From the NCBI GenBank assembly GCA_002269645.1, contig NIVC01000186.1, forward strand, positions 620,001 to 684,000: 64,000 nt of DNA. Reading direction: 5' to 3'. The position numbers were made by a program, and so were the translations under genes. The stretch is from Macrostomum lignano (taxonomy: Eukaryota). Below are positions 15,727-63,650 of the stretch, one piece after another. The notes under the pieces were generated by a model. The model was not told where the DNA came from, searched no databases, and saw only the letters and a list, made by a program, of their open reading frames with translations. The first letter of the stretch is position 1, and every line of letters starts with the position of its first letter.

Positions 15727-28568
<12,842 letters not shown>

Positions 28569-30476: not shown

Positions 30477-31945
30477 TCACTCGATCCGCTTAGCATAGAG
30501 CACAATCTCTCGCAGCTCTTCCGGATCCAGGCCGGCAAACGGCCGCTCGCCATCAACAGGGTCATTGTACTCGACCAGCAGCACCGAGTTGAGCCTGTCA
30601 AAGCCGAGACCCTCGAAGATTCGTCCAGCGTGCCGATGCGCAGCAACGACGTTTACAACTGGGACGCCACGAAGTTTGGCGAGTTCGAGAGAAAAATCGA
30701 TGAGGCGTTTGGCGATACTTCGACTGCGCATCGCTTCTAGGACGACTAGGTACTTGAAATCGACGACTGTGTCAACATTGTAGTGGCTGTACAGATCCAC
30801 AGGAGTTGTCAGATGGTCCAGAACTCGAGTCACGATGGCGTCCTTTGGATACCTAAAGTGAAGGGAGGCGAGTTCGAGGTTGCAGGGGTAATTCATTGTT
30901 GTTGGGTGCTACGAGCGGGTGGGTTTCATAAATGCGAAACTTCACAACTGCTTAAATTTTTGCACTGACTCTCATATACGGCAGTCTTTTTAGCGGTTGT
31001 GAGGTTTCGCGTTCGGGAAAGTAGGTAATTTAGCGGTTGTGAAAGCAACCCTTACGAGCGTATCGAGACCTTGACGATGATTAAAGTTGCGTGCGCCTCT
31101 AGAATTACCCATACCCATTCTTCTAATCTCCTTGGCAATTCGTCCATATCACCCGTGACTAGGAAATATTATTAAGTCGAAATAGATGGGTGCGCTTGAT
31201 ATTTTGGCATCCTGGAGACATTTGGTGGTAACGGTTTGGATCAAGGACGGTTTAAATTTACAAGAAATGTGCTGAACCGTCATGAACGAATTTTTAATAT
31301 CTCGACGACTCGGAAGTTGTTTTGCATATTTTTACGGATAAAAATGTCAAAATATGAAACTTAAATGATGGCAAACTTTGATAAGCCCTTGTGTTGATCC
31401 ATTTTGTGCCAATGGTGTCGCGTGATGGCATGTTCATGATAGTATGCGACATGACTCTGTACGTTTTTGAAAAATCTTCGCGATATTACGAGTAAATGGA
31501 CGGTATAATTACGGGAAAAGTCGACAACTACAAATACTGAACTGATAGTGAAGTAGATTAAATCCGGTACATGTAATTTAGTGAACTGATACGATAATGA
31601 GCTCATTAAAAATGCACACCTCGCCGCAAGCTGCTGGTCCAGCACCAACGGATGCCGTTTCGCGCTCTGCCTCGGCACCAGACTGGAGACTCGAGCTCCG
31701 ACCAGAGCTCCGCTACTCGGATCCTCCGTCACCACCGTCACTCCCTGACCCAGCAGACCGGGCGGTAGTGTCAGATCAATATTTAAATCCTCAGGGTTGA
31801 CCCCGCCAATGTGCTTATTTAGCGGCGTCTTCGGAAAGAAATCCTGCAGCATCAGCTTCCAGATGGCGTCGCGATCGTCTGGTCGAGCGACTCGATAGCG
31901 GAGGCCATCGATGACGCGTTCAGATGGCACCGAGTGGCTCTCCAT
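30477..31945 (-). CDS. GNAT acetyltransferase, insect arylalkylamine/dopamine N-acetyltransferase-like, copy 1 (233 aa, 2 exons)
   Basis: Exons 31945-31620 and 30852-30477 with a phase-2 GT-AG intron (LAAR|YPK). Motifs: YRVARPDDRD..LMLQDFF..PLN, LVGARVS, LVVLEAMRSRSIAKRLIDFSLELAK..G, RIFEGLGF. Confidence 0.8.
30917..31052. mobile_element. Short degenerate member of the 12910 foldback family, in the intron of aaNAT-like copy 1
   Basis: Ends GGGTGGGTTTC / GAAAGCAACCC; shares TTAGCGGTTGTGA units; flanks CTACGAGC / TTACGAGC (7/8). Confidence 0.6.
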
Positions 31946-33849
31946 GCTTCTGGTTTAGAAGTTTAGTACAGAATCTGGCCTTCAAAGATGTAGCTGTAGA
32001 GCCTCTGTTGTAGGAGCTGTCAGGTACAACGCTCTTTTTATCTGCTTTATTTGTGTGTTTGTGCGTGATGCAGTACAGAGAATAAGAAAAGGAGAGAGAT
32101 TTTCGGCTGCTCGGTTATCTGTTTGTTTGGTTCGACTCGAGCCGCACACAGACGTCTTTTGCGATTAGAATGGTCACTTTAATGAAAAGAGGGTGACGTT
32201 CATACCCCTTGACGTCTGCACGGAGTGTGCAGCGGCCCGCTCTCTGAACTGCTAGCCACCCCCGCCTAGAGGCCGGAATCAGGGTCGCGAACTGAGCGAG
32301 GGAGAGAAATGAAGGGGCGGACTGAATGCATATTGGACAAGTGATCTGCAAGATCATGGAACGGAGGGATGAGAGGAGAGAGAATGCCCTAGATTGGAGG
32401 GTGGGGCGCGACGACAGATTATATACCCAGCTCTCAGCAACTTTCCAACGCGCTGTGCTAATGCATGCCTTCCTGTTCTTCCTCCACTGCACATTGGGGC
32501 AGTTGCGACTGCTCCACATTTGCCACTCTTCCCAAAGTCTCCTCCCCTATTCTCCCCCATTCTTGGGGAGATTTCGCGAGGATTGGCTGGTCTCGCTGCA
32601 CTTCCCATTAATCCATTTCCCGTCTTTTAGGCGCGAGCAGCAAGCAGATTTTTCAATCCCTCAGTGCAGAGTGCAGTATGCATGCAGATGACATCCAGGG
32701 CAGTCATGCGACAGCTGTCACTGCCTGCCACATCGGATTGGGCCATCTCTCGAAATCGCATGATTTGACTTCACCCTTGACAAAATCTCGGTGCTCTTTC
32801 CCTTACAGTATAATATAAATAAATTTTTGGAGTAGAAAACAAATACCTGCATGCAATGCAACCAATGTGTCTACAATATTGAAACGTCTTATCTTGCATG
32901 ATTTTTGTCCTTTTCATTTCGAGCATGGGGGCAGCACAAACACTCCACTTTGCTGTTATAGCTAGTATAGAGAGGTCGAGGATCGCATAGGGTCAATAAA
33001 AGTTGGAAAAAAGTACATTTATAAACTTAGCAAGGTCTGGCATGTACGGAGCTAAATTATATCTGCAACGTGAGCACAACTGACTCCAGTATATCTAGCC
33101 GCATGTAGAAAGAAAATATGTCACCACAAACACAGCAGACCATGTGCAAGTGGCGGGTAAAGTTCTTTCCAAAGCTAACACATTATTCATCAGCGATAGA
33201 TCGGATCGAGGACAAAAGAAGGCAAGCAACTTTATTGCAATTTGCTATTTGGGAAACTTTAACTATTGCTAGCGAACAAAGTTATCCAAACTGCAAAATA
33301 TAAGTGTAGCTATGTGTGAGAAAATTTCAAAAAATTTCGAACAGCTGTTATGAAGCTCCATCTCGACATTCAATACGAACATCCTTAAACCTCGTAGCTA
33401 CCGAGGGCTATAGTTATAGATATCAAAGTAGCCATTTTTCGATATTCGATAGACATATCTATCGAGACCCATGAAAATCAGTTATCTATTTGGAAAAATG
33501 AATTAAAACTCATGGTGAGTGACCAGCACTGGTTTTACTCATATTGCATAAATAGCTAGTATCCAAAAATGCTTTCGTGTAGAAGGTCCTATCCCAGTAA
33601 ACAATTTTTATAATGCCTATTGAGCCTTTATCCACAAGGACAGGAATTCGCTGTATGTGCAGTCGGGGAAACAAGCTATGGCCGTCTTAATCCTAGCTAA
33701 AGGATTATAAGTAATCCTTCGAAAGTACTTGACGAACTTTCAATGTATTTAAACTGTGTAAGAACTGCATTCTTATTATTAAGTATAGAATCTACTTGTA
33801 TTAAATTCTACAAACTAATATATTGTACGTTGTATCGAGGTTACACAAG

Positions 33850-38571: not shown

Positions 38572-40195
38572 TCACTCGATCCGCTTTGCATAGAGCACAA
38601 TCTCTCGCAGCTCTTCCGGATCCAGGCCGGCAAACGGCCGCTCGCCATCAACAGGGTCATTGTACTCGACCAGCAGCACCGAGTTGAGCCTGTCAAAGCC
38701 GAGCCCTTCGAAGATTCGTCCAGTGTGCCGATGCGCAGCAACGACGTTTACAACTGGGACGCCACGAAGTTTGGCGAGTTCGAGCGAAAAATCAATGAGG
38801 CGTTTGGCGATACTTCGACTGCGCATCGCTTCTAGGACGACTAGGTACTTGAAATCGACGACTGTGTCAACATTGTAGTGGCTGTACAGATCCACAGGAG
38901 TTGTCAGATGGTCCAGAACTCGAGTCACGATGGCGTTCTTTGGATACCTGAAGTGAAGGTAGGCGACTTTGAAGCCATGGTTGATCAGAGATTGTGGGGG
39001 TAGAGTGCTCAGTGATTAATTCGTCTGACTCTCACGCCGCATCCCTTGGTTCGATTCCGTGCGCGGCCACGAAAGTTAGCCGGGGGCTGTCGTGCGATTC
39101 ACACCAATGAGGGCCAACTCCAAAGGCGTAGAAATTGTACATCCCTGACGACTAGAATATCAGGGACACTGTACACCGCGTCCATGAATGCGTGCCTGCA
39201 TGCCTACGCTTTTTTTGTGCTTAGGAGTCAGCGGAATGGGCAGAATTAATTGATTGTGGGATGATTTTGCTGAACGCGTTGCTCTAGAGTGCCCGCAATC
39301 CTCCTCTTATATATATATATAATGTAATATAATTAAGATGTATTAAGATATATTAATTAAATGTTAAATTGATATGCATATCAGGTATTGTTGTTGAAAG
39401 CTGCCAACCCACTAAGACCATAGCTACATGTACACTGCCGAATCCTAAAGGTAGAACTATATCGATTCGTATTCGTCCGAAATCTTCGCCATTTTTGTTG
39501 AGTGGTTCCTAATTTCGGTCACGTCAATAATGGTTGTGACATCCTTTTATGACGATAGACACTAGTACGCACTCGCTTTTTAATAGCTAGTTAAGAGGTT
39601 TGTTGTGTTTTGTTTGGAGCGGGAACACTTTTTGTGAAATTTCCTATTATCTTAATGAACGAATAGCTGAATATCTCGACGACCCTGAAGGCATTTGTCG
39701 TTTATTCTTTGTGGATAAAATGATGGTGAATTATAACTGAATTGCTTCATTTCGGTCAATGATGTCACGTGATTGCATTTACATGCAAACTAGCTTTCTG
39801 TGTGTTTATGAGAAATATCACGTAGTTTAGTGAACTGATACGATAATGAGCTCATTCAAAAGTGCACACCTCGCCGCAAGCTGCTGGTCCAGCACCAACG
39901 GATGCCGTTTTGCGCTCTGCCTCGGCACCAGACTGGAGACTCGAGCTCCGACCAGAGCTCCGCTACTCGGATCCTCCGTCACCACCGTCACTCCCTGACC
40001 CAGCAGACCGGGCGGTAGTGTCAGATCAATATTTAAATCCTCAGGGTTGACCCCGCCAATGTGCTTATTTAGCGGCGTCTTCGGAAAGAAATCCTGCAGC
40101 ATCAGCTTCCAGGTGGCGTCGCGATCGTCTGGTCGAGCGACTCGATAGCGGAGGCCATCGATGACGCGTTCAGATGGCACCGATTGGCTCTCCAT
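38572..40195 (-). CDS. GNAT acetyltransferase, aaNAT-like, copy 2 (233 aa, 2 exons)
   Basis: Exons 40195-39870 and 38947-38572, the same lengths as copy 1 (326+376 nt). Four amino-acid differences seen (H/Q, I/T, D/N, A/T) plus several synonymous changes. Confidence 0.8.
38996..39320 (+). mobile_element. tRNA-headed SINE (family B) in the intron of aaNAT-like copy 2
   Basis: A-box-like TGCTCAGTGATTA and B box GGTTCGATTCC; body blocks shared with 50243-50510; (AT)n tail. Confidence 0.65.
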
Positions 40196-41360
40196 GCTTC
40201 TGGTTTAGAAATTTAGTAAAGAATCTGGCCTTCAAAGATGTAGCTGTAGAGCCTCTGTTGTAGGAGCTGTCAGGTACAACGCTCTTTTTATCTGCTTTAT
40301 TTGTGTGTTTGTGCGTGATGCAGTACAGAGAATAAGAAAAGGAGAGAGATTTTCGGCTGCTCGGTTATCTGTTTGTTTGGTTCGACTCGAGCCGCACACA
40401 GACGTCTTTTGCGATTAGAATGGTCACTTTAATGAAAAGAGGGTGACGTTCATACCCCTTGACGTCTGCACGGAGTGTGCAGCGGCCCGCTCTTTGAACT
40501 GCTAGCCACCCCCGCCTAGAGGCCGGAATCAGGGTCGCGAACTGAGCGTGGGAGAGAAATGAATTAGGGATAGACTGAGACGGAGCGCGAGAATTCGAGA
40601 TTATGGAACGGAGCTGGATCTGAGGAGTGAGAGGAGAGAGACCTACCATACACTGTAGATCGGATCTAGGTTGGGGCTGGAGTAGATCAGTAGAAGATCG
40701 ATTATTTATCCAGCTATCTCTCTCTTTCTTTTGCAGAGTTTTAGCAACTTCCCAACGCACCTTGCTAATGCATGCGTTCCTGTTCTTATTACTATGGCAG
40801 TTGCAATTGCAATTACTCCGCAGTTGCCACTCTTCCCAACTCCTCCAATTGTCCTTTTTCCTCCAAATTCTAAGATGTACGGGAGACTCACATTCCGCAA
40901 CTGCTGTGAGCAGAATCATAAAATTTGTTGAGTGCATTCATTTTCAAATAACTGCACGTTTTGTGCTGAGGAGGGTACGTGGTTAGAGATTAGAATGGGG
41001 TGACTTTGAACTTAAGCAGTGTTTCTCGAGACATTTAACCATAGAAATTCTGCTCAGCTCCAACACGTACCAGCCTATCCCTTAACATGGAGCCCGCAAA
41101 TTTCTATATTGTTACCCGGAATTTTCTTGCATGACCAAGCTAATGACAATCAAATTATTATAGGTCTTTGCCAGTAGTCAATATCTTTTTTTTCGGGCGA
41201 CTGCGTGCAGCCCTTAAAATTCGATAATGACTACTGCAAAGTTCTATAATGGTATATTGTCGTTATATAGTACTTTGTAATTTGTATATCATTTTGCACT
41301 CTAGCTTAGACTGCGAGCTTTTCATTTCGGAATTGAGTATTTGCCCATCAAGGCAGTGAC

Positions 41361-48410: not shown

Positions 48411-49687
48411 CCAAATCCATGATACAGTAATGAAAGTCAGGATGCCATAGCATAGCACCCGTATACCAAAAAACCTAGGTATAAAGTAAGTAAGTTTGAA
48501 TGAATAAATTAAGCTTAAAATCAATGTAAATTGACTGCAAAAAACCACTGCAGTTCAACCTAGGTTGAATGGTAAGTAGTATATGAGTATAAAGGGAGCA
48601 TAAGAAAATTTATATCTAGAAGAGCTTAGTCCTTTGCCTATGCCATGCCCTAATAGCTTTATACCCTGTTAATTTTGATTGATTTAGCAATATCAAGACT
48701 TTGGTATTATAATAATCTTTTTATTATTGCAAAGTGCAACAATTTTTCTTGAAAACAAGTTGCTATTGTTGGTATCAGTAAGATTATTTTTGCCTATTAA
48801 TAATTAATAATGATATAATAAAACAATATTAATATTATTGCTGACTGTCAATGTTAATAATTAGGCCAACTAAAGCAGAAAAATCGTATGAGTTATGACC
48901 TTACTTATGCTAAATGTGCCTGTCAACAATTTATGCATATGAAATCGGTAACCATTTCAGTTTAGGTTTTGAGCACACAAAAATACAATTTAACAAAGAC
49001 TAATCTCGTGCAAGATCCAAATGCTTTTAGTTGCTACAGTTATTCTGGCCAGCTGTTTCCTAACAGCTAAGCTTTGGAAACGCCTGGCCAAGTATGTCAT
49101 GGACCTGTTCACTATGCGCAATATTATTGGCCCAGCTCAACTGCCATTGGTTGGCAATGCGCACCAATTTGAATACGGGGGCGCCGCTTTCTATCGGCAA
49201 ATCATGGAGCTTGGGCGGCAGTATCAAGACCATCCAATGTTCCGCATCTGGGTTGGCATCTATCCTATTGTTGTACTGCAGAAAGCGAAGTCTGTTGAAA
49301 GTATTCTATCTAGCAGTAAGCATATTACTAAGGCGTTTCAATATGACTTTCTGCACACCTGGCTTGGTACCGGTTTGCTAACCAGCGCAGGAGAGAAATG
49401 GCACTCCCGTAGGAAGATGCTGACGCCAGCTTTTCATTTTAGTATCCTACAGGATTTCTGTCCAGTGTTTAGCGAGCAGTCTCGAGTGCTGCTGCAGGTG
49501 CTGGATGATCAGCTGGATGCTGACGGTCAGGCTGAGCTGGATATCTTTCCCTATATGGGACGCTGCGCTCTGGATATTATCTGCGAGACTGCCATGGGCT
49601 GTCAGGTACTATTGATAGATACTGATAATATATTATCATATTATAGATGATAAATAGATAGATAAGATTCCTACAGATAGATAGAAA

Positions 49688-49992
49688 GGGGGTTGTAGCC
49701 TAGTGGTTAGAGTGTCGGACTCGCAACTTGAAGGTCGGGGGTTCGATTCTCGACCCACTCGGAACAATTTGTATCCTTGAGCAAGACACTTAACTCTGCA
49801 TTGCTTCAGTTCACCCAGCTGTAAAATGGATGCCAGCATTAGCTGGGGTAATTGAGGCTGTGTGGCGACCAACCAGTACTTGGACTGAACAGCCGTACGC
49901 AGCCTTCAGATGCGCCGCGCAATAGCTGCGGCTGAGCTGTCGGTTGCACATCTTCCCATTGGGGGCAGGTGTAGTCAATTATTATTATTAAT
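49688..49992 (+). mobile_element. tRNA-derived CORE-like SINE in CYP4 intron 1
   Basis: A box TAGCCTAGTGG and B box GGTTCGATTC. Body TCCTTGAGCAAGACACTTAAC..CAGTT..CTGTAAAATGG resembles the MIR CORE domain. (ATT)n tail. Confidence 0.7.
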
Positions 49993-50242
49993 ATCTAGAT
50001 AGAGCTTTGAAGTGGTGGAAGAATGACTATTTAATCAATCGCTTGATTATCCAGCATGTTTGAATCTGGAGAGCTAAGTATTTCAGGGATCTAGTAATGG
50101 GATGTGTTCGATTGTTTTGTAAAAATGTAATGCAAAGAGAGGTCTTTGGATAGGTTGAAACCGTTTAAGAACCATATGGATATTTAGAGTGACGTAGATA
50201 TCAGTAGCTTTATAAAGGCTTGTACACGAAAATTTGTCGTTG

Positions 50243-50510
50243 GGGAGTTGTCGTGCGATTCACAGTCCTAGGAGCCAGCCTCAAGCCAGCTCCCCCTCCC
50301 CTCAAGACAAGGCACATATAGAGAGTGTACATGCCTGACGATTAGAAAGTCGGGGCCGCTGTACACCCTGTGTGAGCGTGTGCCTGCGTACAGCATTGGC
50401 GCGCTTGTATTGTGCTCAGGAGTCAGCGGAATGGGCAGAATCGCTTTAGAGTTGGTAATGGCAAGGAGACAATGTCTCCGAAGGCGTTGCTCCAGAGTGC
50501 CCGCAACCCT
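50243..50510 (+). mobile_element. 5'-truncated SINE family B copy in CYP4 intron 1
   Basis: Shares TGTCGTGCGATTCACA, CCTGACGA, AGGAGTCAGCGGAATGGGCAGAAT (24-nt identity) and GCGTTGCTC.AGAGTGCCCGCAA with 38996-39320. Confidence 0.65.
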
Positions 50511-50982
50511 ACTGTAAATATTTAGTTTTTGTCTGCAGTAATCAACTTTTACATATCTATATATGTAGGTAAAGTAAGTCTCTAGATGTATCTATAGGTA
50601 TTCAGAGTGAAAAATGGGTAGGATTTTCTTGGAATCAGTAGATCTGGCACTAGAGTAGAATAAATATAATACTAGCTACTTAGTAAGTAGTATTAGCAGC
50701 AGTTTATTACAATAGCTCCGATCCGTCCGTTTCCCCAGGTTCACGCCCAAACTGAGCAGAACAGCGAGTACGTCACCTCCGTAGCCAACATGTCCGAGAT
50801 TGTGATGCGCCGTTTGAAAAATCCCCTATACTATTCGGAGTCGCTATTCGCTCGCAGCCGCTTGTCCGCCGAGCAGAATGCCTGTCTGGGCGTTATGCAC
50901 GCCTTCACCACCGGCGTCATTGCCGAGCGTCGGGCCGACTTTGCCGCGATGTCAGAGGAGGAGCGTCGCGATCAGATGGCGA

Positions 50983-53900
50983 CATAGTTGCCACCCCTGC
51001 TCAAATTTTGAGCAATTGCTCAAAAAAATTTAAGCTGCTCAAATGCTCAATTTTATTTGGTTCTGCTCAAAAAAGTAATTATTTTTTTGCTTGTCTATTT
51101 TTTACTTCTATTGCTAAAAAGTCATTCTAAATAAAGTAAGAAAGGTCAAAATGATTCTTGTTCCTTCTTTTTGGGTCATTAGTTTTGTAATTTTCTCTAT
51201 AAACTTATACGTATAAGTCTATGTATAAGTATATTATATGTATAAGTAGTGAAAGTACTAAAGTGGGAATCTAGGGAAGTAGTAGTTTAGGTACTACGCT
51301 CGTATAAAATTCAAGTCACATTTCAGCCACATTCTAATGCCCACTGATCGAAAAACGAAGTGGAATGCTACCTGGTTATCTGAACATGACCATTCTGGGG
51401 TCAAAATATCACGATGGTGCCAGAAAGACGACGACAATGACGATGAAGCCACATGTAGATTGTGCAACCGTGGAGTAAATTTTCGTCAACATGGCATTGC
51501 TGCTTTGCGACAACATGCTGATGGTGCAAAGCACAAGGCTCTTTCTCGGGCTATGGTTGCTGCTTACAGTCAGCAAAAAATCAATGCTTTTTTCCCAATC
51601 ACTCCATCTGAGAACCAACAACTAAAAAAAGTGGAGGCAGAGGCATCTTTGCCCCAACAGACCATGGCGGCGAGCCTACGATTCGGACTGCTTGTTGTTC
51701 GGAAAGACCTATCATTCAAAACTATGGACGAAATTTCTGAAACACTGCCTGTTGCTATTCCTGATAGCAGTGTTGCTCAGAACTTTTCATGTGGAAGAAC
51801 CAAGACAACGTACCTGGTCACTGATGCACTTGCCCCACATGCTAAGGAGGAAATGTTTAAGAGCCTTCGTGACTCTCCCTTTTCAATTCTGCTTGATGAG
51901 GGCACGAAACGTGACCGCTGCTGGCTGGTTTTACTGGCCCGCACTTTCTGCATTGAAAGGCAGAAGGTAATTCTTGTCTACATTGGTTCAGAGGAGCTTA
52001 AAAATTCATCGGCGTCAAATATGAAGGACACAGTTTTGTCGTTGCTATCCCAAGCCAAATTGCCTGCAAGGAATGTTATTTCCGTGATGACAGATTCCTG
52101 CAATGCAATGAGAGGTATGCGAGATAGCTTGATGAGTAATCCTTGTTGACAAAGATCCTGTCCCTAAAATAATTCACCTTTCACATTTCAGGCATCCACA
52201 ATGGACTTCTCACCAAGCTGAAAGATGCTATGCCGCAGCTTATTGATGTTGGAGGCTGCAGTCTCCATCATGTACATAATAGTGTTCAATATGCAACTAA
52301 GGCATTTGACAGCACTGGCGAGGCTGAAGGACTGATGGATGATGTCTATAACTATTTCCGATTTGTGAAAAGGCGCGGAGCATTCCATGAGGTATGAATT
52401 TAAACTTTGCTTAATCTTGAATGTGCTTTTCTTCCCTGACAAAAATTAAAATTTTTAGATTCAGGATGCACTGGACCTGGCTGAACACGTGTTCATCCGC
52501 CGAGTCGAAACTCGCTGGCTCCAGATTCTAAACGTCATTCGACGGATTCTAGAGCAATGGGAGGCCCTGAAGCTGCACTTTGAGAAAGCTAGTGCCTCAG
52601 AACTGGACAACATTCGGGCACGACGAATCAAGCTGGCCCTTACTGATGAGATGCTAGCCAAGCTCCAGTTCTTAAGCCAAGTGCTGCCAAGATGCGAAGC
52701 ATTCGAGAAAATTTTTCAGCGGGAGAGCACTCAGGTTCACCACTTGGCTTCTTCGCTGGAAAAGCTTTTTAGTGACATTCTTCTTTGCTTCATGCGGAGT
52801 GAAGTTGTTGAAAACAGCCGCTCTCTTTCAGACCTGGTTGACAGGGCTACTGATCGCAACAATCAACTAATGAACAAAGATCTAATCATCGGCTCGGCCA
52901 CCCGTGAGACTGTTGCACGGTTACGTCAGATGGAGCAGATTGGCTTTTTTAAGTCAGTTCGCTGCTTCTTTTCTGAAATTATTAGTCGACTGTTTGCCTA
53001 CTTACCTTTCAACAACAAGGTGCTTTCTGGCCTTCAGTTTGTGGATCCTGAATACATGTTGGGATCAGACTTCAACTTTGACAACAGCATTCTACGTGTT
53101 GGGCGTGCTATGAGCACAGTCATTTCTGCCGACTTGCTGGATGATATCCGGCTGGAAGCTACAAGGCTTCGACTGACCTGCCCAACTGAGAAAGCAAAGG
53201 AGACACCAGAGGCTTTTTGGGCACAGCTTTCTGTTGAAGATTATCCTCATCTTTCTAAACTAGGTCGTGCTGCCTGCTGCATACCGCACGGTAATGCAGA
53301 TAGTGAACGAGTTTTGAAATGGGTGGCCAACAACTTGACCAAGCAGCGCAATAGGCTAGGAGAAGTTACGCTGGACTCGATTTTGGCTGTGAAAGTTTGG
53401 ATGAAATGCAACAGCACTGGCCCAGCCAAGGTCACTATTGATTCTAACCTGCTGGACACAGCTTTTCAAGCCAAAAGCAAAGCCGATGAGCGACGACGAG
53501 CTAAGCAAAACGAAAAGGCCATGAAGCGACTTCAGCAAGCACTGGAGGAGCAGCGACGACTGGTTACTGAAAAGGAGAAAGAGCTCCAGCAGCAGAAGCA
53601 ACAAAAGCAGGCAGAGGCCCAAACAAAGATTGACGAAATGCGCAAGAAGGCTCAGGACATGCTCGCACTTGCTGATAAGGAGGAGCATGCCCTACGCAAG
53701 CGGCATGGTGACAGTGAAGAAGCAAAATCAAAGAAGAAGAAGAAATGACTATGTTTGTACATTTTATCAGCTTAAAATTTACTGAATGTTTGTAGTAACT
53801 ATAACTCTAAGCTTCATGCTGTAGTCTTTATTGTCTGAGGTGCTTCTTTTTATTTTTGTCTGCGCAACTTGAAACAATTTTCCTTGTACATGTAAACCAT

Positions 53901-54034
53901 TTTTGTTTTCGAATTTACTAAATGTCTGTCATAGTGAAAAGAAAAACTGGTTTGTGGGAAGGATGCGAGTTTTTGACCTGCGCTAAAAATTAGTCCTTGC
54001 GCTACTTTTCTTCAAAAACTGGGTGGCAACTATG
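50983..54034 (+). mobile_element. Full-length hAT DNA transposon (3052 bp)
   Basis: Perfect 14-bp TIRs CATAGTTGCCACCC / GGGTGGCAACTATG. Identical 8-bp TSD GATGGCGA at 50975-50982 and 54035-54042. Subterminal TGCTCAAA repeats at the left end. Confidence 0.95.
51337..53748 (+). CDS. hAT transposase, intact (755 aa, 3 exons)
   Basis: Exons 51337-52114, 52192-52391, 52459-53748 (77- and 67-bp GT-AG introns). BED-type zinc finger (W..CRLC..LRQHADGAKH), LLDEGT, VMTDSCNAM, CSLH (CxxH), TRW, NADSERV, basic C-terminus KSKKKKK. No stops or frameshifts after splicing. Confidence 0.88.
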
Positions 54035-54329
54035 GATGGCGATTAGGCGACGAAGGAAGCGCTTAACTTTTCTTGATCTGCTGCTATTCGAAAGCGAGAC
54101 TGGTGCCAAGCTAACCGATTCGGACATTCGGGAGGAGGTGGACACCTTCATGTTCGAGGGCCACGACACCACTGCCGCCGCTATGACCTGGTGCCTGTTC
54201 CTGCTGGGCCGGCATCCCGACGTCCAGGCCGAGGTGCACAAGGAAATCGACGCCATCTGGGAAGAGGTATCAGTCTGTCTGTGCTGTATTTCTCAGGTTC
54301 AACCAAAACTGTACTCCGTGATTACTTCA

Positions 54330-55145
54330 GATCCTCCGATAGGCTACCAGAACTCGCAGATCCTCAGGTTGGGCTACCAGAACTCTCAGATCCTCCAATT
54401 GGACTACCAGAACTCTCAGATCCTCCAATTGGACTACCAGAACTCTCAGATCCTCAGATTGGACTACCAGAACTCTCAGATCCTCATACTGGGCTACCAG
54501 AAGCCTTCAGATCCTCAGACTGAGCTACCAGGACTCTCAGATCCTCAGACTGAGCTACCAGAACTCTCAGATCCTCAAATTGGGCTACCAGAACTCTCAG
54601 ATCCTCAAATTGGGCTACCAGAACTCGCAGATCCTCAGGTTGGGCTACCAGAACTCTCAGATCCTCCAATTGGACTACCAGAACTCTCAGATCCTCCAAT
54701 TGGACTACCAGAACTCTCAGATCCTCCAATTGGACTACCAGAACTCTCAGATCCTCAGATTGGACTACCAGAACTCTCAGATCCTCATACTGGGCTACCA
54801 GAAGCCTTCAGATCCTCAGACTGAGCTACCAGGACTCTCAGATCCTCAGACTGAGCTACCAGAACTCTCAGATCCTCAAATTGGGCTACCAGAACTCTCA
54901 GATCCTCAAATTGGGCTACCAGAACCCGTAGATCCTCAAATTGGGCTACCAGAAGCCTTCAGATCCTCAGACTGAGCTACCAGAAGCCTTTAGATCCTCA
55001 GACTGAGCTACCAGAAGCCTTCAGATCCTCAGACTGAGCTACCAGAACTCTCAGATCCTCAAATTGGGCTACCAGAACTCTCAGATCCTCAAATTGGGCT
55101 ACCAGAAGCCTTCAGCTGCTCAGACTGAGCTACCAGAAGCCTTCA
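54330..55145. repeat. 29-30-bp minisatellite, CYP4 intron 2
   Basis: CTACCAGAACTCTCAGATCCTCAAATTGGG units with a duplicated block of variants. Confidence 0.93.
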
Positions 55146-55779
55146 TATCCTATATAAATAGTAGTTCTATAGCCAGAAAGCAACAAAACTCGCAGGGACG
55201 CCTCAGCCCCGAGGGCCACCTGACTTCCGAATGCCTGAACCAGCTGAGCCTGTTGGACCGCTGCGTCAAGGAGGCCCTCCGCATCTATCCGTCTGTGCCG
55301 TTCTTTGGCCGCGAAGCAGCTGAAGACATCGAAGTGGACGGCTACACAATCACCGCCGGCACCACGGTGCTGGCTCTGGCCACTCAGCTGCACCGCGATC
55401 CCGAATATTTCCCCGAGCCGGAGAAATTCAACCCGGACAGATTCCTGCCAGAGGCTGTGCGCGGACGCAATCCTTATGCCTATGTGCCTTTCTCTGCTGG
55501 GCCTCGCAACTGCATCGGCGCTAAGTTTGCCCAACTAGAAGAGAAAGCCGTGCTGTGCTGGTTTCTAAGGCACTATGACGTCACCAGCCTGCAGACTGAG
55601 GAGGAGGTTGACCCGGCCGGGGAGCTTATTCTGCGTCCGGCTCACGGTATTCGACTGCGGGTGCAGAGGAGGAACGTCTGATTCGAAATATTGATGTGTT
55701 GGAAGAACTGACAGATAACTTTGCGAGTTTCATGGGATTAATATGTTTGATTAAAAAAACCGGAGTGATACTTCGGAGT

Positions 55780-56716
55780 GTTTTTTCTCGTGTGATTCTA
55801 GCGAGTGATTCTTTAGAGTGATTTTAACGAGTGACTCTTTAGAGTGATCCCTTGCTTGTGTGACTCTTTGGAGTGATTCAAATGAGTGACTCTTCGGAGT
55901 GATTCTAGCAAGTGACTCTTCGGAGTGATTCTAGCGAGTGACTCTTCGGAGTGATTCTAGCAAGTGACTCTTCGGAGTGATTCTAGCGAGTGACTCTTCG
56001 GAGTGATTCAAATGAGTGACTCTTCGGAGTGATTCTAGCAAGTGACTCTTCGGAGTGATTCTAGCGAGTGACTCTTCGGAGTGATTCTAGTGAGTGACTC
56101 TTCGGAGATATTCTAGCGAGTGACTCTTCGGAGTGATTCTAGCGAGTGACTCTTCGGAGTGATTCAAATGAGTGACTCTTCGGAGTGATTCTAGCAAGTG
56201 ACTCTTCGGAGTGATTCTAGCGAGTGACTCTTCGGAGTGATTCTAGTGAGTGACTCTTCGGAGATATTCTAGCGAGTGACTCTTCGGAGTGATTCTAGCG
56301 AGTGACTCTTCGGAGTGATTCAAATGAGTGACTCTTCGGAGTGATTCTAGCAAGTGACTCTTCGGAGTGATTCTAGCGAGTGACTCTTCGGAGTGATTCT
56401 AGTGAGTGACTCTTCGGAGTGATTCTAGCGAGTGACTCTTCGGAGTGATTCTAGCGAGTGACTCTTCGGAGTAATTCAAATGGGTGACTCTTCGGAGTGA
56501 TTCTAGCGAGTGACTCTTCGGAGTAATTCAAATGGGTGACTCTTCGGAGTGATTCTAGCAAGTGACTCTTCGGAGTGATTCTAGCGAGTGACTCTTCGGA
56601 GATATTCTAGCGAGTGACTCTTCGGAGTGATTCAAATGAGTGACTCTTCGGAGTGATTCAAATGAGTGACTCTTCAGAGTGATTCTAGCGAGTGACTCTT
56701 CGGAGTGATTCTAGCG
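55780..56716. repeat. 26-bp satellite with 156-bp higher-order repeat
   Basis: GAGTGACTCTTCGGAGTGATTCTAGC; the CAAATG variant recurs at 56009, 56165 and 56321. Confidence 0.95.
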
Positions 56717-57420
56717 ATGGACCCTTTACACGTGACCTGTGTGCCATTTTTATTACTTTGCCAAATGATTTTTTCAGTAAATAGCTAATTTTTATAAATT
56801 TATCGTTCTCTTATTGTCTCGGCTCAAAAAGTTTTGTCATAGAATAATTCGATTCTATTTCGTCATATAATTAGTCATAGTAGATCATTATGCAAGTCAT
56901 GACCAGATTTTTTAATCCTATCCTTTTACATTTTTTATACGATTGGCTTGAGTATTGAGTCGTTGTCGCAGCACAGAATTATTTGCATCCATTCTAATCC
57001 TTTCTAATTCCGTATAGATCATGCGTTTGTTGTCCCCGATTTCAAACTTTTGTTCCAATTTTAAAATAAAATAAATCAATAAATTTTTATATATTGATTT
57101 TCATCTTGATGCAGATGTTGCTGTTGATCAGTGTTTACTTTTTATTTGAAAATTAACTCTTAGGCGACTCTTTGATGATTTTTGGCGATCGTGACATCTC
57201 GTCCTTTTTAGGGTCGTGTAGAGTCACTTCTTTCCTATTTCACCTGTGTTGCTTGCAATGACTCTGGATCGACGCAAGTTGCTCTTTGGCATTGGTACTG
57301 TTTTCATAACCCATGAAAACCCAAGATAACCCACCCCATTATCCTTAATATATCAATCCCGTAGTTAAATAGTGATTCTGCTGCTAATTGAGGTCCTACT
57401 TTGATGCTAATCCGGTTTCC

Positions 57421-58347
57421 ATGGCGGAGCGCTCGGCCGCCTATCAGCTTCATCATGTGCAGCATCAGCAGCAACAACAACAGCAGCATCTGCAGACTCG
57501 CGTTAGCGATCATGCCTTCTGGGAGCAGGAGATGCGCGCGATTCAAGCCATCCCATCGGAACTGTCTGCATTCAAAAGCGCGGAGTTGCCGTTGGCTCGA
57601 ATCAAAAAGATTATGAAATTAGATGACGATGTTAAGACTATGATGATCGCAGCCGAGGCCCCGCTATTGTTCTCCAAGGCGGCTGAGATCTTCATTCGCG
57701 AGCTCACCTATCGAGCCTGGATGCACACAGAGCGGGCCAGACGGCGGACTCTTCAGCGTAACGATATTGCGCTAAGCGTTGGCGATCCGGAAACTGATCA
57801 ATTCGACTTTCTTATCGACATTGTGCCGAGAGATACGCCGCCGCCGTCGCTTCCGCCTCATCAGCAGCATCAGATGGCGCATTATCAACAGCAAACAGCA
57901 ATTGCTGGGCATAACAGCGCCAGCGCCGGTAGCAGCAGCAAGAATAACAATAATCACAATACTAATAATAATATTAATAAGTCCACTTCATCCTCGGCCG
58001 GCTCCTCGGCATCATCAACAATGGCGGCTGTGATCAGCAGCGGCGGTGGCTCGGCGCCAGTTCAATACGTTATCCAATTGCCAGTTGGTGCGGCTGCTGG
58101 TGGCCAGCTGGTTGGAGGCAGTGCCGGCCTGCAAGTTCAGTCACAGTCTCAGCAGCAGCAGCCGATGCAGATCTTCATCAGTCATCAGGAGGCCGCTGCA
58201 GCTGCCGCCGCTGCCGCTCCTACATCCGTAACGGTTTCTACTAGCATCCAGCCGGTTGACGTTAAGCCAATCATTACAACCGCGACGATGGTCAGTTCCT
58301 CAGCGACATCATCTGCTGCTGGTCCACCTGCACATGCCCAACTGTAG
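57421..58347 (+). CDS. NFYC: Nuclear transcription factor Y subunit C, intronless CDS (308 aa)
   Basis: Histone-fold core [69 protein letters not shown], then a Q/A/S-rich tail. First ATG of the ORF at 57421. Confidence 0.92.
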
Positions 58348-58464: not shown

Positions 58465-58830
58465 TTCCCTTCCAGACTCTTATGTTTAGAACCCCGTGTT
58501 TCACGGTTTGGGTTCCCTGTCCAGACACTAAGTTTAGAACTCCATGTTTCACTGGTTGAGTTCCCTTCCTAGACTCTGGGTTTAGAACTCCATGTTTCAC
58601 TAGTTGAGTTCCCTTTCTAGACTCTGGGCTTAGAACTCCATGTTTCACTGGTTGATTTCCCTTTCCAGACTCTGGCTTTAGAACTCCATGTTTCACTGGT
58701 TGGGTTGCCTTTCCAAGCTCTGGGTTTAGAACTCCATGTTTCACTGGTTGAGTTCCCTTTCCAAACTATGGGTTTAGAACTCCGTGTTTCACTGATTGAG
58801 TTCCCTTTCCAGACTCTAGGTTTAGACCCT
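58465..58830. repeat. 48-bp minisatellite 3' of NF-YC
   Basis: TTCCCTTTCCAGACTCTGGGTTTAGAACTCCATGTTTCACTGGTTGAG, about 8 copies. Confidence 0.9.
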
Positions 58831-59334
58831 TGCTTGAGAACTTCGTATGCGTTCAACAAAGGTTAGTAATAAAAGTATATTAACAGATTTTCCTACCCTC
58901 TCGAGTGGGTTATGTCGAACTTTCCCAGTGTTAAAATTTTGCGTTTTTGGTTTGATATTCCTATTGTCCATTAAAATTAAGGTGATCTGTTGTTTATTTC
59001 AATTAGTAGTTAAGAAAAAAGTTATTCGAGCTGTTCAATCAGTTGGCACTGCGTTTTTTGTGAAATATTATATTTACTCTGCAAATTGTTTTTTTACTGT
59101 TTTCTGTAGCTTCTGCTTCCATAAGTAGTATGCAGAGTGTGCACCATTAATCAGTTGATTTGCTTGTGTTTTTATGAAAATACGCCTTACTGTCTTCCTT
59201 TGTTTCTGCTGATGCTAACGGAAAATATCCATCGATTTCTTGCATCTTAACTGAGGTGTTTTCTTTGAACAACTTCTCTTGTGTTGCTCAATTTGTTTTT
59301 TTATAGCTTCAATGTACGCATTGTGTCGACCAAA

Positions 59335-59710
59335 CTCCCCAGTGCACACTGCTCCGGACACAACCCCAATCCCGCCCATAAAACACCCCAGGGCACACTG
59401 CTCCCGACACAACCCCACCCATAAAACACCTCAGTGTACACTGCTCTCGACGTAGCCCACCCATAAAACACCCAGTGTACACTGCTCTCGACGTAGCCCA
59501 CCCATAAAACACCCAGTGTACACTGCTCTCGACGTAGCCCACCCATAAAACACCCAGTGTACACTGCTCTCGACACAACCCCACCCATAAAACACCCCAG
59601 TGTACACTGCTCCCGACACAACCCCACCCATAAAACACCCCAGTGCACACTGCTCCCGACACAACCCCACCCATAAAACACCCCAGTGTACACTGCTCCC
59701 GACACAACTC
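59335..59710. repeat. 42-43-bp minisatellite, block 1
   Basis: CATAAAACACCCCAGTGTACACTGCTCCCGACACAACCCCACC units. Confidence 0.92.
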
Positions 59711-60504: not shown

Positions 60505-61165
60505 CACAAACACCCCAGTGTAGGCTGCTCCCGACACAACCCCATCCATAAAACACCCCAGTGTACACTGCTCCCGACGCAACCCCATCCATAAAACACC
60601 CCAGTGTACACTGCTCCCGACGCAACCCCAGCCATAAAACACCCCAGTGTACACTGCTCCCGACACAACCCCAGCCATAAAACACACCAGTGCACACTGC
60701 TCCCGACACAACCCCATCCATAAAACACCCCAGTGTACACTGCTCCCGACGCAACCCCATCCATAAAACACCCCAGTGCACACTGCTCCCGACGCAACCC
60801 CATCCATAAAACACCCCAGTGCACACTGCTCCCGACGCAACCCCACCCATAAAACACCCCAGTGCACACTGCTCCCGACGCAACCCCAGCCATAAAACAC
60901 CCCAGTGTACACTGCTCCCGACACAACCCCACTCATAAAACACCCCAGTGCACACTGCTCCCGACGCAACCCCAGCCATAAAACACCCCAGTGCACACTG
61001 CTCCCGACGCAACCCCACCCATAAAACACCCCAGTGCACACTGCTCCCGACGCAACCCCAGCCATAAAACACCCCAGTGTACACTGCTTCCGACACAACC
61101 CCACTCATAAAACACCCCAGTGCACACTGCTCCCGACGCAACCCCACCCATAAAACACCCCAGTG
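60505..61165. repeat. 43-bp minisatellite, block 2
   Basis: Same unit as block 1, about 15 copies, ending about 70 bp before the ATMIN ATG. Confidence 0.93.
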
Positions 61166-61236
61166 CAGGCTGCTTTAAATTTCTGTTATTTCATGAAGTT
61201 GCCAACTGTGCAGCGAGTTAACAGACGCTGACTAGC

Positions 61237-62639
61237 ATGCTTCCCGGCCAGGGGGATGGTGATCAACAGCGGCAGCAGCCGGCTGTACTGAAAATCACTC
61301 CAACAAAAGCCGAGCTCATTAGAGAGTTCAGCTGTCCGGAATTTCCGCTAGTATGCACTCTGTGCAATTTGCCATTCCGTTCCACTAGCAATCTGCGCTT
61401 TCACATGGTCAAGACTCACCGCTGCTCTGATCCGAGCGCCGCTCTGGCCGCGGCCGTGTCAGCGGCTCCGGAAATCAAGCGCTACCATTGTCCGGAGATC
61501 AACTGTCCGTATAGCGAGTTGCGGGGAGAGTTTTTTACAACTCTGTCTAGAGTTAAACAGGTTAGATGTTTTTTATTTTCGGCTTCGTGTGAGATGAGTT
61601 ACAGAATCTCCACGGCAGTGTCAGCAGGGAATTCCCTGCAGTGTCAGCAGGGAATCCCCCTAGCAGTGTCAGCAGGGAATCCCCCCTAGCAGTGTCAGCA
61701 GGGAATCCCCCCTAGCAGTGTCAGCAGAAAATCCCCCAGAAGTTTCAGCAGGGAATCCCCCCTAGCAGTGTCAGCAGGGAATCCCCTAGCAGTATTAGCA
61801 GGGAATCCTCCTAGCAGTGTCAGCAGGAAATCCCTTAAACAATTTCCAAACGCTCAATCCTGCAGCACTACAGCTGGAAGCACGTGGAGAAGAAATCCCA
61901 GTGCCGCTACTGTTCCCGCCGCTTCCCATCCGACTCTCTGCTCGGCCTTCACCTGCGCGACTGCGGCAGATTCTTCAATTGTGAAGAGTGCTCCCGGTTC
62001 TATCGGGATTTGAAAAACTTGCGCAGCCACTTCAAGAAGACTGGCCACGGCGCTAACAGCATCTTCAATCAGCGCCAACGACGCAGGCCGCAGTGCCGCG
62101 GACTGAAGAATGAACAGCGGCGGACTGGCAACGCCGAAGACGTTGATCTGGACGATCGAGTTGTTCAGAGTCCCGCCGCAGCCAGCGGCTTCGGTGGCGA
62201 CGTCAGCGCGTCGCTCGCCAGTGCTCCGGCCGTCAGTGAGTCGCCAAAGCCAATGAACCTGGTGATTGTGCTCACCGGCCTTGGCGGCGGCGCTCCCTCA
62301 GCCTCGGTGATGTCCGTCTCAGCTGATGCGGCCGCCGCCGCGGCTAAAGCTACGGCTGCCAGCAGCGCTAACGCCAGCGCTAATGCTAACAATGCATCGG
62401 GCCCAACAAGCCGTTACCGGCCGCTGGTGCCCCGGCCGCTGCCAACTGAGACCCGAGCCTGCCAGACAGACTCGGCCCTGACTAATGAGTTTCACCCGCC
62501 GTCTTACCTGTACAGCCAGCAGCAGCCAATGCTGTACAGGGCGCATCATCACACTGGCCCAGTGATGGTGCACGATCATGCCAGCTTCCGGGGCTCCAGC
62601 TGTTCCAATTTTGCTGTTGTGTCATTTCAAGATTCCAAT

Positions 62640-62682
<43 letters not shown>

Positions 62683-63041
62683 GCACTATGCATACTCAGA
62701 CAGAGTACACTTCTCCTATTGCTACGGATGGTTACTCTGTTGGGGTCCAGTACTCTTATCAGCAGCAGCAGCAGCAACAGCAGGCGACTCAATCGTCTCA
62801 ATCCAACAATTCCGGCATAACTCAAGGCGTCTGCGTTGGCTCCGGCGCCTCACCGCCCATCACTCTGGGCATTCAGGCTGGCCCAGATCCGCTTGAGCAG
62901 CTGCTCGACATGGAGACTCAAACTAACGACGCGTTCGGCAGCGGCTTTGCCGGCTGCGAGATGGAAACTCAAACTTACGAAGAGTTCGACTGGGAGACCG
63001 TGTTCGGCATTGTTAATCGGCGCTCCACTGGTGTGGGATAA
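61237..63041 (+). CDS. ATMIN: ATM interactor / ASCIZ zinc-finger protein (~499 aa, 2 exons)
   Basis: Exons 61237-61560 and 61866-63041 (phase 0). Four N-terminal fingers in ATMIN order: C2H2, CP..C..KQH..KH, C2HC ending LHLRDC, and one ending SHFKKTGH. C-terminal TQT-type motifs (ACQTD, MHTQTE, METQTND, METQTYE). Confidence 0.85.
61610..61830. repeat. 23-26-bp minisatellite in the ATMIN intron
   Basis: GCAGTGTCAGCAGGGAATCCCCCTA units. Confidence 0.88.
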
Positions 63042-63234
63042 TTTTCCCATTGATTTCCAGTAACCCAGTGGCCGTATTGATAATTGATGATTGATAAATA
63101 TAAAGCACCAATTCGTTTGCTATTGATATCTTCTGTTCTATAATTATGTCTAACATTGATCCAGTACACAGTTACAAGACAAAAGCCTTAAGTGCTTCAG
63201 CGTCTATGGATCCAAGCCTACCAAATCTACAATA

Positions 63235-63650
63235 TCATTCAGGCTCGTCCTGAATCATTCAGGCTGGCCATCAATCATTCAGGCTCGTCCTGAATCATTC
63301 AGGCTCATCATGAATCATTCAGGCTGGCCATCAATCATTCAGGCTCGTCATGAATCATTCAGGCTCGTCAATGAATCATTCAGACTTGTCATGAATCATT
63401 CAGGCTCGTCAATGAATTATTCAGACTGGCCATCAATCATTCAGGCTCGTCATGAATCATTCAGGCTCGTCAATGAATCATTCAGACTTGTCATGAATCA
63501 TTCAGGCTCGTCATGAATCATTCAGGCTCGTCATGAATCATTCAGGCTGGCCATAAATCATTCAGGCTCGTCAATGAATTATTCAGACTTGTCATGAATC
63601 ATTCAGGCTCGTCATGAATCATTCAGATTCGTCATGAATCATTCAGGTTC
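63235..63650. repeat. ~20-bp minisatellite
   Basis: AATCATTCAGGCTCGTCATG units. Confidence 0.92.

Follow-up and report, generated by a model that had tools for sequence, protein, structure and literature searches.

Within a 64,000-nucleotide stretch of the Macrostomum lignano genome (positions 620001-684000 of contig NIVC01000186.1, assembly GCA_002269645.1; hereafter the window), exon 2 of a cytochrome P450 gene of the CYP4 family is split by a segment that resembles a DNA transposon of the hAT superfamily. This locus raises the question of whether the segment is a complete and recently mobile element, and what its arrival did to the host gene. We conclude with good confidence that it is a full-length, autonomous-type hAT element that recently inserted into one of three homeologous CYP4V-like genes, disrupted that copy, and is likely still mobile or was so until very recently. 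Positions given below are those of the window unless another locus is named, and the coordinates of the features are collected in Table 1.

The element is 3052 bp long (50983-54034, approximately 670983-674034 of the contig), has a G+C content of 43% and lies in the same orientation as the CYP4 gene. An earlier inspection of the letters alone, which we call the sequence-only reading, had described perfect terminal inverted repeats (TIRs) and an identical target-site duplication (TSD). Both descriptions are exact: the element ends in the 14-bp TIR CATAGTTGCCACCC and is flanked by the 8-bp duplication GATGGCGA. With up to two mismatches permitted, the TIR occurs only twice in the window. The TIRs of hAT elements are about 10-25 bp long and follow the consensus YARNG, in which the second base is A and the fifth is G; CATAGTTGCCACCC has both, and its position 3 is T, a minor deviation from the expected purine.

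An exact-protein look-up, the only route by which further copies were found, revealed a second copy on contig NIVC01000302.1 (locus L001), so that at least two copies are known. This copy is 100% identical to that of the window over all 3052 bp, sits between a CTNNBL-like gene and a MutS-family gene, has a GenBank transposase model annotated on it, and is bordered by an exact 8-bp TSD of its own, GTGCGCTT. The match between the two loci extends from TIR to TIR only, plus one chance base past the right TIR. Since the L001 alignment is confined to 50983-54034, the boundaries of the element are fixed independently. Two identical copies at unrelated sites and with different TSDs record two separate integration events. 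A larger segmental duplication containing both copies is contradicted by the unrelated flanks and the different TSDs.

The assembly contains three homeologous CYP4 loci, the one in the window with the insert and two others, L002 (NIVC01002395.1) and L004 (NIVC01000432.1), both of which show an empty target with a single GATGGCGA. The sequence-only reading had proposed a very recent insertion, for which near-identical copies elsewhere would speak, and this proposal is borne out by the identical second copy with its own TSD and by the two clean empty sites. The two copies of the element differ at 0 of 3052 positions, whereas the coding sequences (CDSs) of the window CYP4 gene and its homeolog L002 differ at 27 of 1539 (1.75%); single-nucleotide polymorphism divergence among the three M. 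lignano subgenomes is 1.9-2.4% (PMC10733133). Zero differences in 3052 bp therefore place both insertions long after the genome duplication, and, as judged from sequence divergence, the insertion is far younger than that event.

We considered whether a transposon copy had simply been misjoined into the CYP4 locus of a repeat-rich, three-subgenome assembly. The M. lignano genome is indeed very repeat-rich (PMC5730564), but the insert is flanked by an exact 8-bp duplication of host DNA found only once in each of the two homeologs, which marks a real integration. Moreover, an RNA-derived gene model runs from exon 2 into the element, and an independent gene model needs the insert as well (both are described below). 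We regard an assembly artefact as very improbable. The same structural evidence bears on the idea that the transposase gene is a domesticated, hAT-derived host gene, which could explain why it is annotated as a 'hypothetical protein' and is not repeat-masked. This idea is refuted by the perfect TIRs and TSDs together with the empty homeologous sites, and neither the identical copies at two unrelated loci nor the position inside an exon of another gene agrees with it.

The transposase gene comprises three exons separated by two GT-AG introns of 77 nt (52115-52191) and 67 nt (52392-52458). The spliced product is 755 amino acids long, contains no internal stop and terminates at TGA 53746-53748, and the GenBank protein BOX15_Mlig011045g2 (5'-partial, start 51334) is identical to it except for one extra leading residue. 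The uninterrupted 755-residue protein of the sequence-only reading is thus the one on record. A TATAAAA box upstream of the gene, if it is the element's own promoter, would imply a very short 5' untranslated region.

Several lines of evidence identify the protein as a hAT transposase. Its sole Pfam match is Dimer_Tnp_hAT (PF05699; residues 575-641, E 1.5e-6, scoring 28.3 bits where the cutoff is 21.4), a domain that is also matched by 41 of the 60 relatives in our family alignment. In a phmmer search of PDB only Hermes transposase was returned (E 4e-8); in that alignment C282-H285 corresponds to CSSH of Hermes, TRW to TRW, and SER to the motif of the Hermes catalytic glutamate. None of the 60 family members varies at C40, C43, H60, H66, C282 or H285, and at least 90% of them share D187, D253, W346 and E609. 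The same alignment served to build an AlphaFold2 model (pLDDT 94, pTM 0.82), which was compared with PDB by Foldseek; the top 12 matches were all Hermes (E 1.7e-12 to 1.8e-9, target-normalized TM 0.58-0.68), with the next match at E 0.06. Sequence alignment and predicted fold together show an RNase-H-like DDE core, an alpha-helical insertion, the Trp residue and the C/DxxH motif of hAT transposases. The DDE-type acidic residues and the CxxH motif that had been noticed from the letters correspond to D187/D253/E609 and C282xxH285, conserved in the family and aligned with Hermes. The protein ends in a K/E/Q-rich tail of about 95 residues that closes with KKKKK.

A HMMER search of 1.84 billion representative proteins yielded 5414 relatives; the top-ranking one from outside Macrostomum aligns full-length, with no more than 33% identity. 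The exhaustive search was required: a word-indexed protein search returned only 2-3 matches, whether the full or the tail-trimmed protein was used. Few of the relatives are named (M. lignano, tick and hagfish 'hypothetical' entries), and nearly all others are metagenome or Logan proteins. Two relatives are closer, an M. lignano protein that is 58% identical and has a large internal gap (P0002), and a 279-residue Logan fragment that is 56% identical (P0132). These argue for long residence rather than horizontal transfer, a possibility raised by the sequence-only reading which fails because this search gave no close relative outside Macrostomum.

By the defining features that we examined at the level of sequence, the element is a hAT transposon. 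Like Hermes of Musca domestica and other hAT elements (hobo, Ac, Tol2, TcBuster), it combines an 8-bp TSD, exact at both copies, with short TIRs and a single transposase gene, and its transposase shares with theirs a C-terminal PF05699 domain, a DDE triad with CxxH and a conserved Trp, and a large all-alpha insertion domain. Sequence identity to Hermes is only 15-18% over structural alignments. The finger of Hermes is CCHC (PMC10368747), whereas that of the window transposase is CCHH. The CATAG start of the TIR, the long K/E/Q-rich tail and the TGCTCAA motif described below also set the element apart from Hermes and other hATs.

Its place within the superfamily is less sharply marked. Buster-type hATs with a DUF4371 domain include TcBuster and the lineage behind vertebrate ZBED5 and FAM200; 16 of the 60 family members match DUF4371, and relative P0123 has a precomputed weak match to PF27073 (FAM200-ZBED5_RNase-like), whereas the window transposase matches neither. 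The matches in relatives are a hint that the family lies on the Buster side. As for the TSDs, Arensburger et al. reportedly gave in 2011 the consensus nTnnnnAn for the Ac family. GATGGCGA departs from it with A2 and G7 and GTGCGCTT, which has T2, with T7, although only two sites are compared. The Buster consensus is nnnTAnnn (PMC3499496), and positions 4-5 are GG in GATGGCGA and CG in GTGCGCTT, which, from two sites, is weak evidence.

A second hAT family (P0125) is present in M. lignano, represented by two copies of 3670 bp at positions 3438-7107 of both L005 (NIVC01000195.1) and L006 (NIVC01000881.1). These copies are 100% identical to each other and have TSDs CTTGCATG and ATTCGGGC. The two families are alike in having two identical copies, 8-bp TSDs and short TIRs, and their transposases are 33% identical over the full length. 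They differ in that the second family has an intronless open reading frame (ORF) of 791 codons, the classic terminus CAGTGTTCCCAC and GCGGAA/TTCCGC subterminal motifs. From these copies, recent hAT activity seems to be a property of the M. lignano genome. Full-text literature searches found no paper on a hAT element in Macrostomum.

The left end contains six copies of TGCTCAA, all within its first 90 bp. Five are direct copies beginning at 50998, 51017, 51036, 51044 and 51064 (spacings 19, 19, 8 and 20 bp); the sixth, at 51007-51014, is in inverted orientation. Directly inside the left TIR, the first pair makes up the quasi-palindrome TGCTCAAATTTTGAGCA, and TGCTCAAA occurs five times within 50998-51071 against one further copy in the rest of the 64 kb. 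The observation of the sequence-only reading that the left-end repeats are not mirrored on the right is correct, as the exact TGCTCAA motif was not found in the right end. Present there are two copies of TGCGCTA, a degenerate form of TGCTCAA that runs in the same absolute orientation, and a single TGCGCAA. In Hermes, the subterminal repeats at left-end positions 11-27 make a quasi-palindromic pair to which BED domains bind, and the left and right ends differ in the arrangement of their repeats (PMC10368747). The window element likewise has a quasi-palindromic pair inside the left TIR and another arrangement at the right end. By likeness to STR1/STR2 of Hermes (PMC10368747), we infer that the TGCTCAA-type repeats are transposase binding sites. 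The asymmetric transposase binding suggested earlier is reasonable, but it belongs to standard hAT biology; by comparison with Hermes, asymmetric subterminal repeats are a documented trait of the family and not a new feature (PMC10368747).

Taking hAT biology as a guide, the 755-residue transposase would bind the ends through its N-terminal CCHH finger on the TGCTCAA-type repeats and would dimerize or oligomerize via the C-terminal hAT domain. The RNase-H-like D187/D253/E609 site would then excise the element, leaving hairpins on the flanking DNA, and reinsertion would proceed through an 8-bp staggered cut. One such integration put the element into CYP4 exon 2, and transcripts of that copy run into it and terminate two codons later.

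Turning to the host gene, we joined the flanks in silico with one copy of the TSD and obtained a P450 of 512 amino acids, encoded in three exons with GT-AG introns. The rejoined protein matches Pfam p450 with an E value of 4.9e-112 over model positions 3-458 of 462 and contains FSAGPRNCIG, in agreement with the heme motif FxxGxRxCxG. P450s that share more than 40% identity with named members are placed in the same family. The rejoined protein is 46-50% identical, over nearly its full length, to annotated CYP4V2 and CYP4V2-like proteins of molluscs, echinoderms and vertebrates, and it shares with CYP4V/CYP4C P450s the I-helix signature, encoded in exon 2, and PFSAGPRNCIG. The element interrupts this copy after residue 276, and the rejoined gene showed no other lesion. 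The sequence-only reading, according to which the CYP4 gene is otherwise undamaged and returns to frame upon precise removal, is upheld in this respect.

Locus L002 carries an intact 512-residue gene, BOX15_Mlig026450g1, identical to the rejoined window P450 at 508 of 512 residues; the search for an intact homeologous CYP4 thus had a positive outcome. Among the 27 CDS differences between the two, 23 lie in codons whose amino acid is unchanged and 4 in changed codons, a split which indicates purifying selection until the insertion. For each of the two other allele types, a full-length protein has been recorded. Because two homeologs have an empty site and at least one of them is intact, the insertion amounts to the loss of one copy of three and not to an organismal null. 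The 'null allele' of the sequence-only reading consequently holds for the disrupted copy, which yields a 277-residue product, but not for the animal. That this allele is potentially revertible is correct insofar as precise restoration is possible; it is not to be expected, since hAT excision, which proceeds through flank hairpins and end-joining, commonly leaves small insertions or deletions (PMC3499496).

Some further observations concern the homeologs. At L004, exon 3 (approximately 8857-8860) reads CCC where the window has CCCC, and the resulting frameshift (ending GRLSPRAT and a stop) gives an annotated product of 365 amino acids. This one-base deficit may be a homopolymer assembly error, as a full-length 512-residue protein of the same allele type is present in UniProt (P0304). 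Shared indels and the residues F64, N166 and A208 place L004 with L002 in exon 1 and intron 1 (window 49606-50738 compared with L002 10586-12360), whereas the homeolog-diagnostic residues of the window copy are L64, D166 and T208. The exon 2 sequence of L004 around the insertion site does not differ from that of the window. We rejected the idea that L004 is the empty allele of the window locus, since in exon 1 and intron 1 it follows L002 and departs from the window by large indels. This pattern suggests homeolog mosaicism by gene conversion, recombination or scaffold chimerism between subgenomes.

Both CYP4 introns contain repetitive or repeat-like sequence. Most of intron 2 is filled by a tandem array of 30-bp units (54327-55138, about 27 copies of TCAGATCCTCAAATTGGGCTACCAGAACTC) with a higher-order period of 301 bp, an array that L002 and L004 also carry, though not in the same number of copies. 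Intron 1 has a tRNA-like stretch at approximately 49690-49770, which includes GGTTGTAGCCTAGTGGTTAGAG and, further on, GGTTCGATTC and is conserved in the three homeologs. ARAGORN called no tRNA in this stretch, which is possibly the head of a short interspersed nuclear element.

Gene models on record bear on both the transposase and the disrupted CYP4 copy. The Mlig_3_7 gene models in GenBank were derived from RNA-seq and transcriptome mappings, with removal of transcripts that overlap repeats (PMC5730564). The RNA-derived, spliced transposase model therefore indicates that a spliced transposase mRNA exists, and its retention in a repeat-filtered annotation indicates that the element was not recognized as a repeat, in keeping with a low copy number. 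For the host gene, BOX15_Mlig002785g1 (P0302, 277 amino acids) is the exact read-through of the window CYP4 into the element; it ends two codons inside and lacks the I-helix and the heme-binding cysteine. The window CYP4 copy is disrupted and evidently still transcribed, and it is non-functional unless the element is spliced out.

Such splicing would turn the insertion into a hypomorph rather than a knock-out: a cryptic intron from the GT at 50951 to the AG at 54046 would remove the whole element and leave an in-frame P450 that lacks only the 12 residues SEEERRDQMAIR upstream of the I-helix. UniProt A0A1I8HXQ1 (P0004) is exactly this product, as it uses 50951-54046 as an intron and is reproduced in full when the window is translated with its exons. 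The recorded range of BOX15_Mlig002785g1, too, ends at 54047, immediately after that AG, and transposons that splice out of host transcripts are known from the maize Ds and dSpm alleles. On the other hand, the RNA-derived GenBank product is the 277-residue read-through truncation and not the spliced form, nothing suggests that a P450 minus 12 residues folds or works, and P0004 looks like an ab initio prediction because it takes an unusual alternative donor in exon 1, with the loss of 36 residues. A hypomorphic allele is therefore unlikely in our estimation, and we favor a disrupted copy. Possibly the host excises the element from the CYP4 transcript, via the flanking cryptic GT-AG or via spliced-leader trans-splicing at 54047. 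Position 54047, the first base past the AG that A0A1I8HXQ1 also uses, may be a trans-splice or transcript-cut site, or a cryptic cis-splice site.

From the identity of the second copy over 3052 bases and the clean empty sites of both homeologs, we infer that the element is likely still mobile, or was so until very recently. Several observations weigh against the reading of an active, typical hAT element. Its TIR begins with CATAG, which is not the usual CAG/TAG-type hAT terminus. The finger of the transposase has no match in Pfam zf-BED, with either the full protein or residues 1-86, and residues 1-86 matched no BED structure in PDB by sequence. Only two copies were found, by exact-protein look-up. 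The count of zero differences may be slightly flattered, since assembly polishing can homogenize repeats. Moreover, the RNA-derived transposase model leaves the transcribed copy unassigned between two identical elements. Finally, a passage of PMC4604429 describes somatic and germline PIWI/piRNA transposon silencing in M. lignano, which may keep the element quiet. With respect to the finger, the sequence-only reading had named it a BED finger. Its CCHH motif (C40-x2-C43-x16-H60-x5-H66), invariant in the family and modeled as a beta-hairpin followed by a helix, resembles a BED finger only in position and pattern; it is probably BED-related, even though Pfam does not recognize it.

The most serious alternative is that the element is intact and recent but immobile, owing to piRNA silencing or to a subtle inactivating substitution, and now persists as a fixed, stable lesion in the DV1 line. 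P0004 can be derived only from sequence that bears the insert, so that two independent annotations apparently include the insertion, that of P0302 (GenBank Mlig_3_7) and that of P0004 (UniProt), as fixation in an inbred line would predict; the low number of copies seen and the silencing pathway point the same way. Against immobility, all of the conserved catalytic and zinc-binding residues are intact, and the RNA-derived gene model means that some copy is transcribed and correctly spliced. The absence of differences between the copies, set beside 1.75% between homeologous CDSs, and the two identical copies of the second family, which suggest generally recent hAT activity, also speak against it. 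We consider immobility a possibility to be taken seriously but doubtful, and prefer the reading of a recently mobile element. A stronger version, that the element represents a deep-branching hAT lineage (at most 33% identity, CATAG terminus, CCHH finger) which is mobile in laboratory M. lignano at present alongside the second hAT family, is put forward tentatively, as we judge it somewhat short of probable.

Table 1. Positions in the window of the hAT element, its transposase gene and the interrupted CYP4 gene.
Feature	Position	Strand	Remarks
CYP4 exon 1, residues 1-195	49021-49605	+	98.3% identical to L002
CYP4 exon 2, upstream part	50739-50982	+	read-through ...RRDQMAT, stop TAG 50986-50988 inside element
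Cryptic GT...AG interval, 3096 nt	50951-54046	+	encloses whole element; removal in frame, minus 12 residues SEEERRDQMAIR
Left TSD copy (8 bp) GATGGCGA	50975-50982	.	same as 54035-54042; single at empty sites L002 and L004
Left TIR (14 bp) CATAGTTGCCACCC	50983-50996	+	100% complementary to 54021-54034; L001 homology begins exactly here
Left subterminal repeats, TGCTCAA x6	50998-51071	+	putative transposase (zinc-finger) binding sites
TATAAAA box	51303-51309	+	possible internal promoter; about 31 nt upstream of annotated CDS 5' end 51334
Transposase exon 1	51337-52114	+	CCHH finger C40, C43, H60, H66; catalytic D187, D253
Transposase exon 2	52192-52391	+	C282xxH285
Transposase exon 3	52459-53748	+	R345-W346, alpha-helical insertion domain, dimerization region 575-641, E609, tail
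Right subterminal TGCGCTA x2	53979-54004	+	at 53979 and 53998, 19 bp apart as left repeats; weak, two copies
Right TIR (14 bp)	54021-54034	-	exact reverse complement of CATAGTTGCCACCC
Right TSD copy GATGGCGA	54035-54042	.	exact duplicate of 50975-50982
CYP4 exon 2, downstream part	54043-54266	+	carries I-helix motif
CYP4 exon 3	55196-55681	+	heme-binding motif PFSAGPRNCIG and stop codon

Beyond these features, six minisatellites lie 3' of the CYP4 gene, at 55792-56717 (26-bp unit), 58465-58826 (48 bp), 59332-59708 (43 bp), 60508-61174 (43 bp), 61615-61834 (26 bp) and 63234-63647 (20 bp). The first begins about 110 bp past the CYP4 stop codon, and all six recur in L002. A dispersed repeat of 745 bp is present at 31570-32313 and 39819-40563, in copies that are 98.5% identical. 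Other coding regions of the window (57388-58347, 8259-8930, 5238-6260, 61884-63041, and 27786-28568 on the minus strand) comprise a histone-fold gene (CBFD_NFYB_HMF) that is syntenic in all homeologs and several C2H2 zinc-finger ORFs. One further ORF ends in the first half of an SH3 domain.

Collectively, the element is a new, uncharacterized and probably active member of a well-known superfamily, ordinary in kind. For transposon biology in general it is unsurprising, and all of its features fall within the known hAT repertoire. Its interest lies in the host. M. lignano is a flatworm model with working transgenesis, in which Minos gave no integration (PMC5730564); for piggyBac, a passage of PMC8717057 gives proof-of-principle status only. 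In a model organism that still has no robust transposon tool, an intact and apparently very recently mobile endogenous hAT element has practical value as a candidate tool, with ends of about 100-250 bp, a defined transposase and catalytic-dead controls. If the element is currently mobile, M. lignano, the only flatworm in which transgenesis is stable, would have a transposon/transposase pair of its own for transgenesis or insertional mutagenesis. Active hAT elements could also cause spontaneous mutations in inbred lines; current mobility would make this one an unrecognized source of such mutations in the DV1 and NL lines, and hAT-based vectors might be mobilized there. For the genome itself, the locus offers a dated example of gene-copy loss caused by a transposon after polyploidy, in a neopolyploid genome of three subgenomes (PMC10733133).

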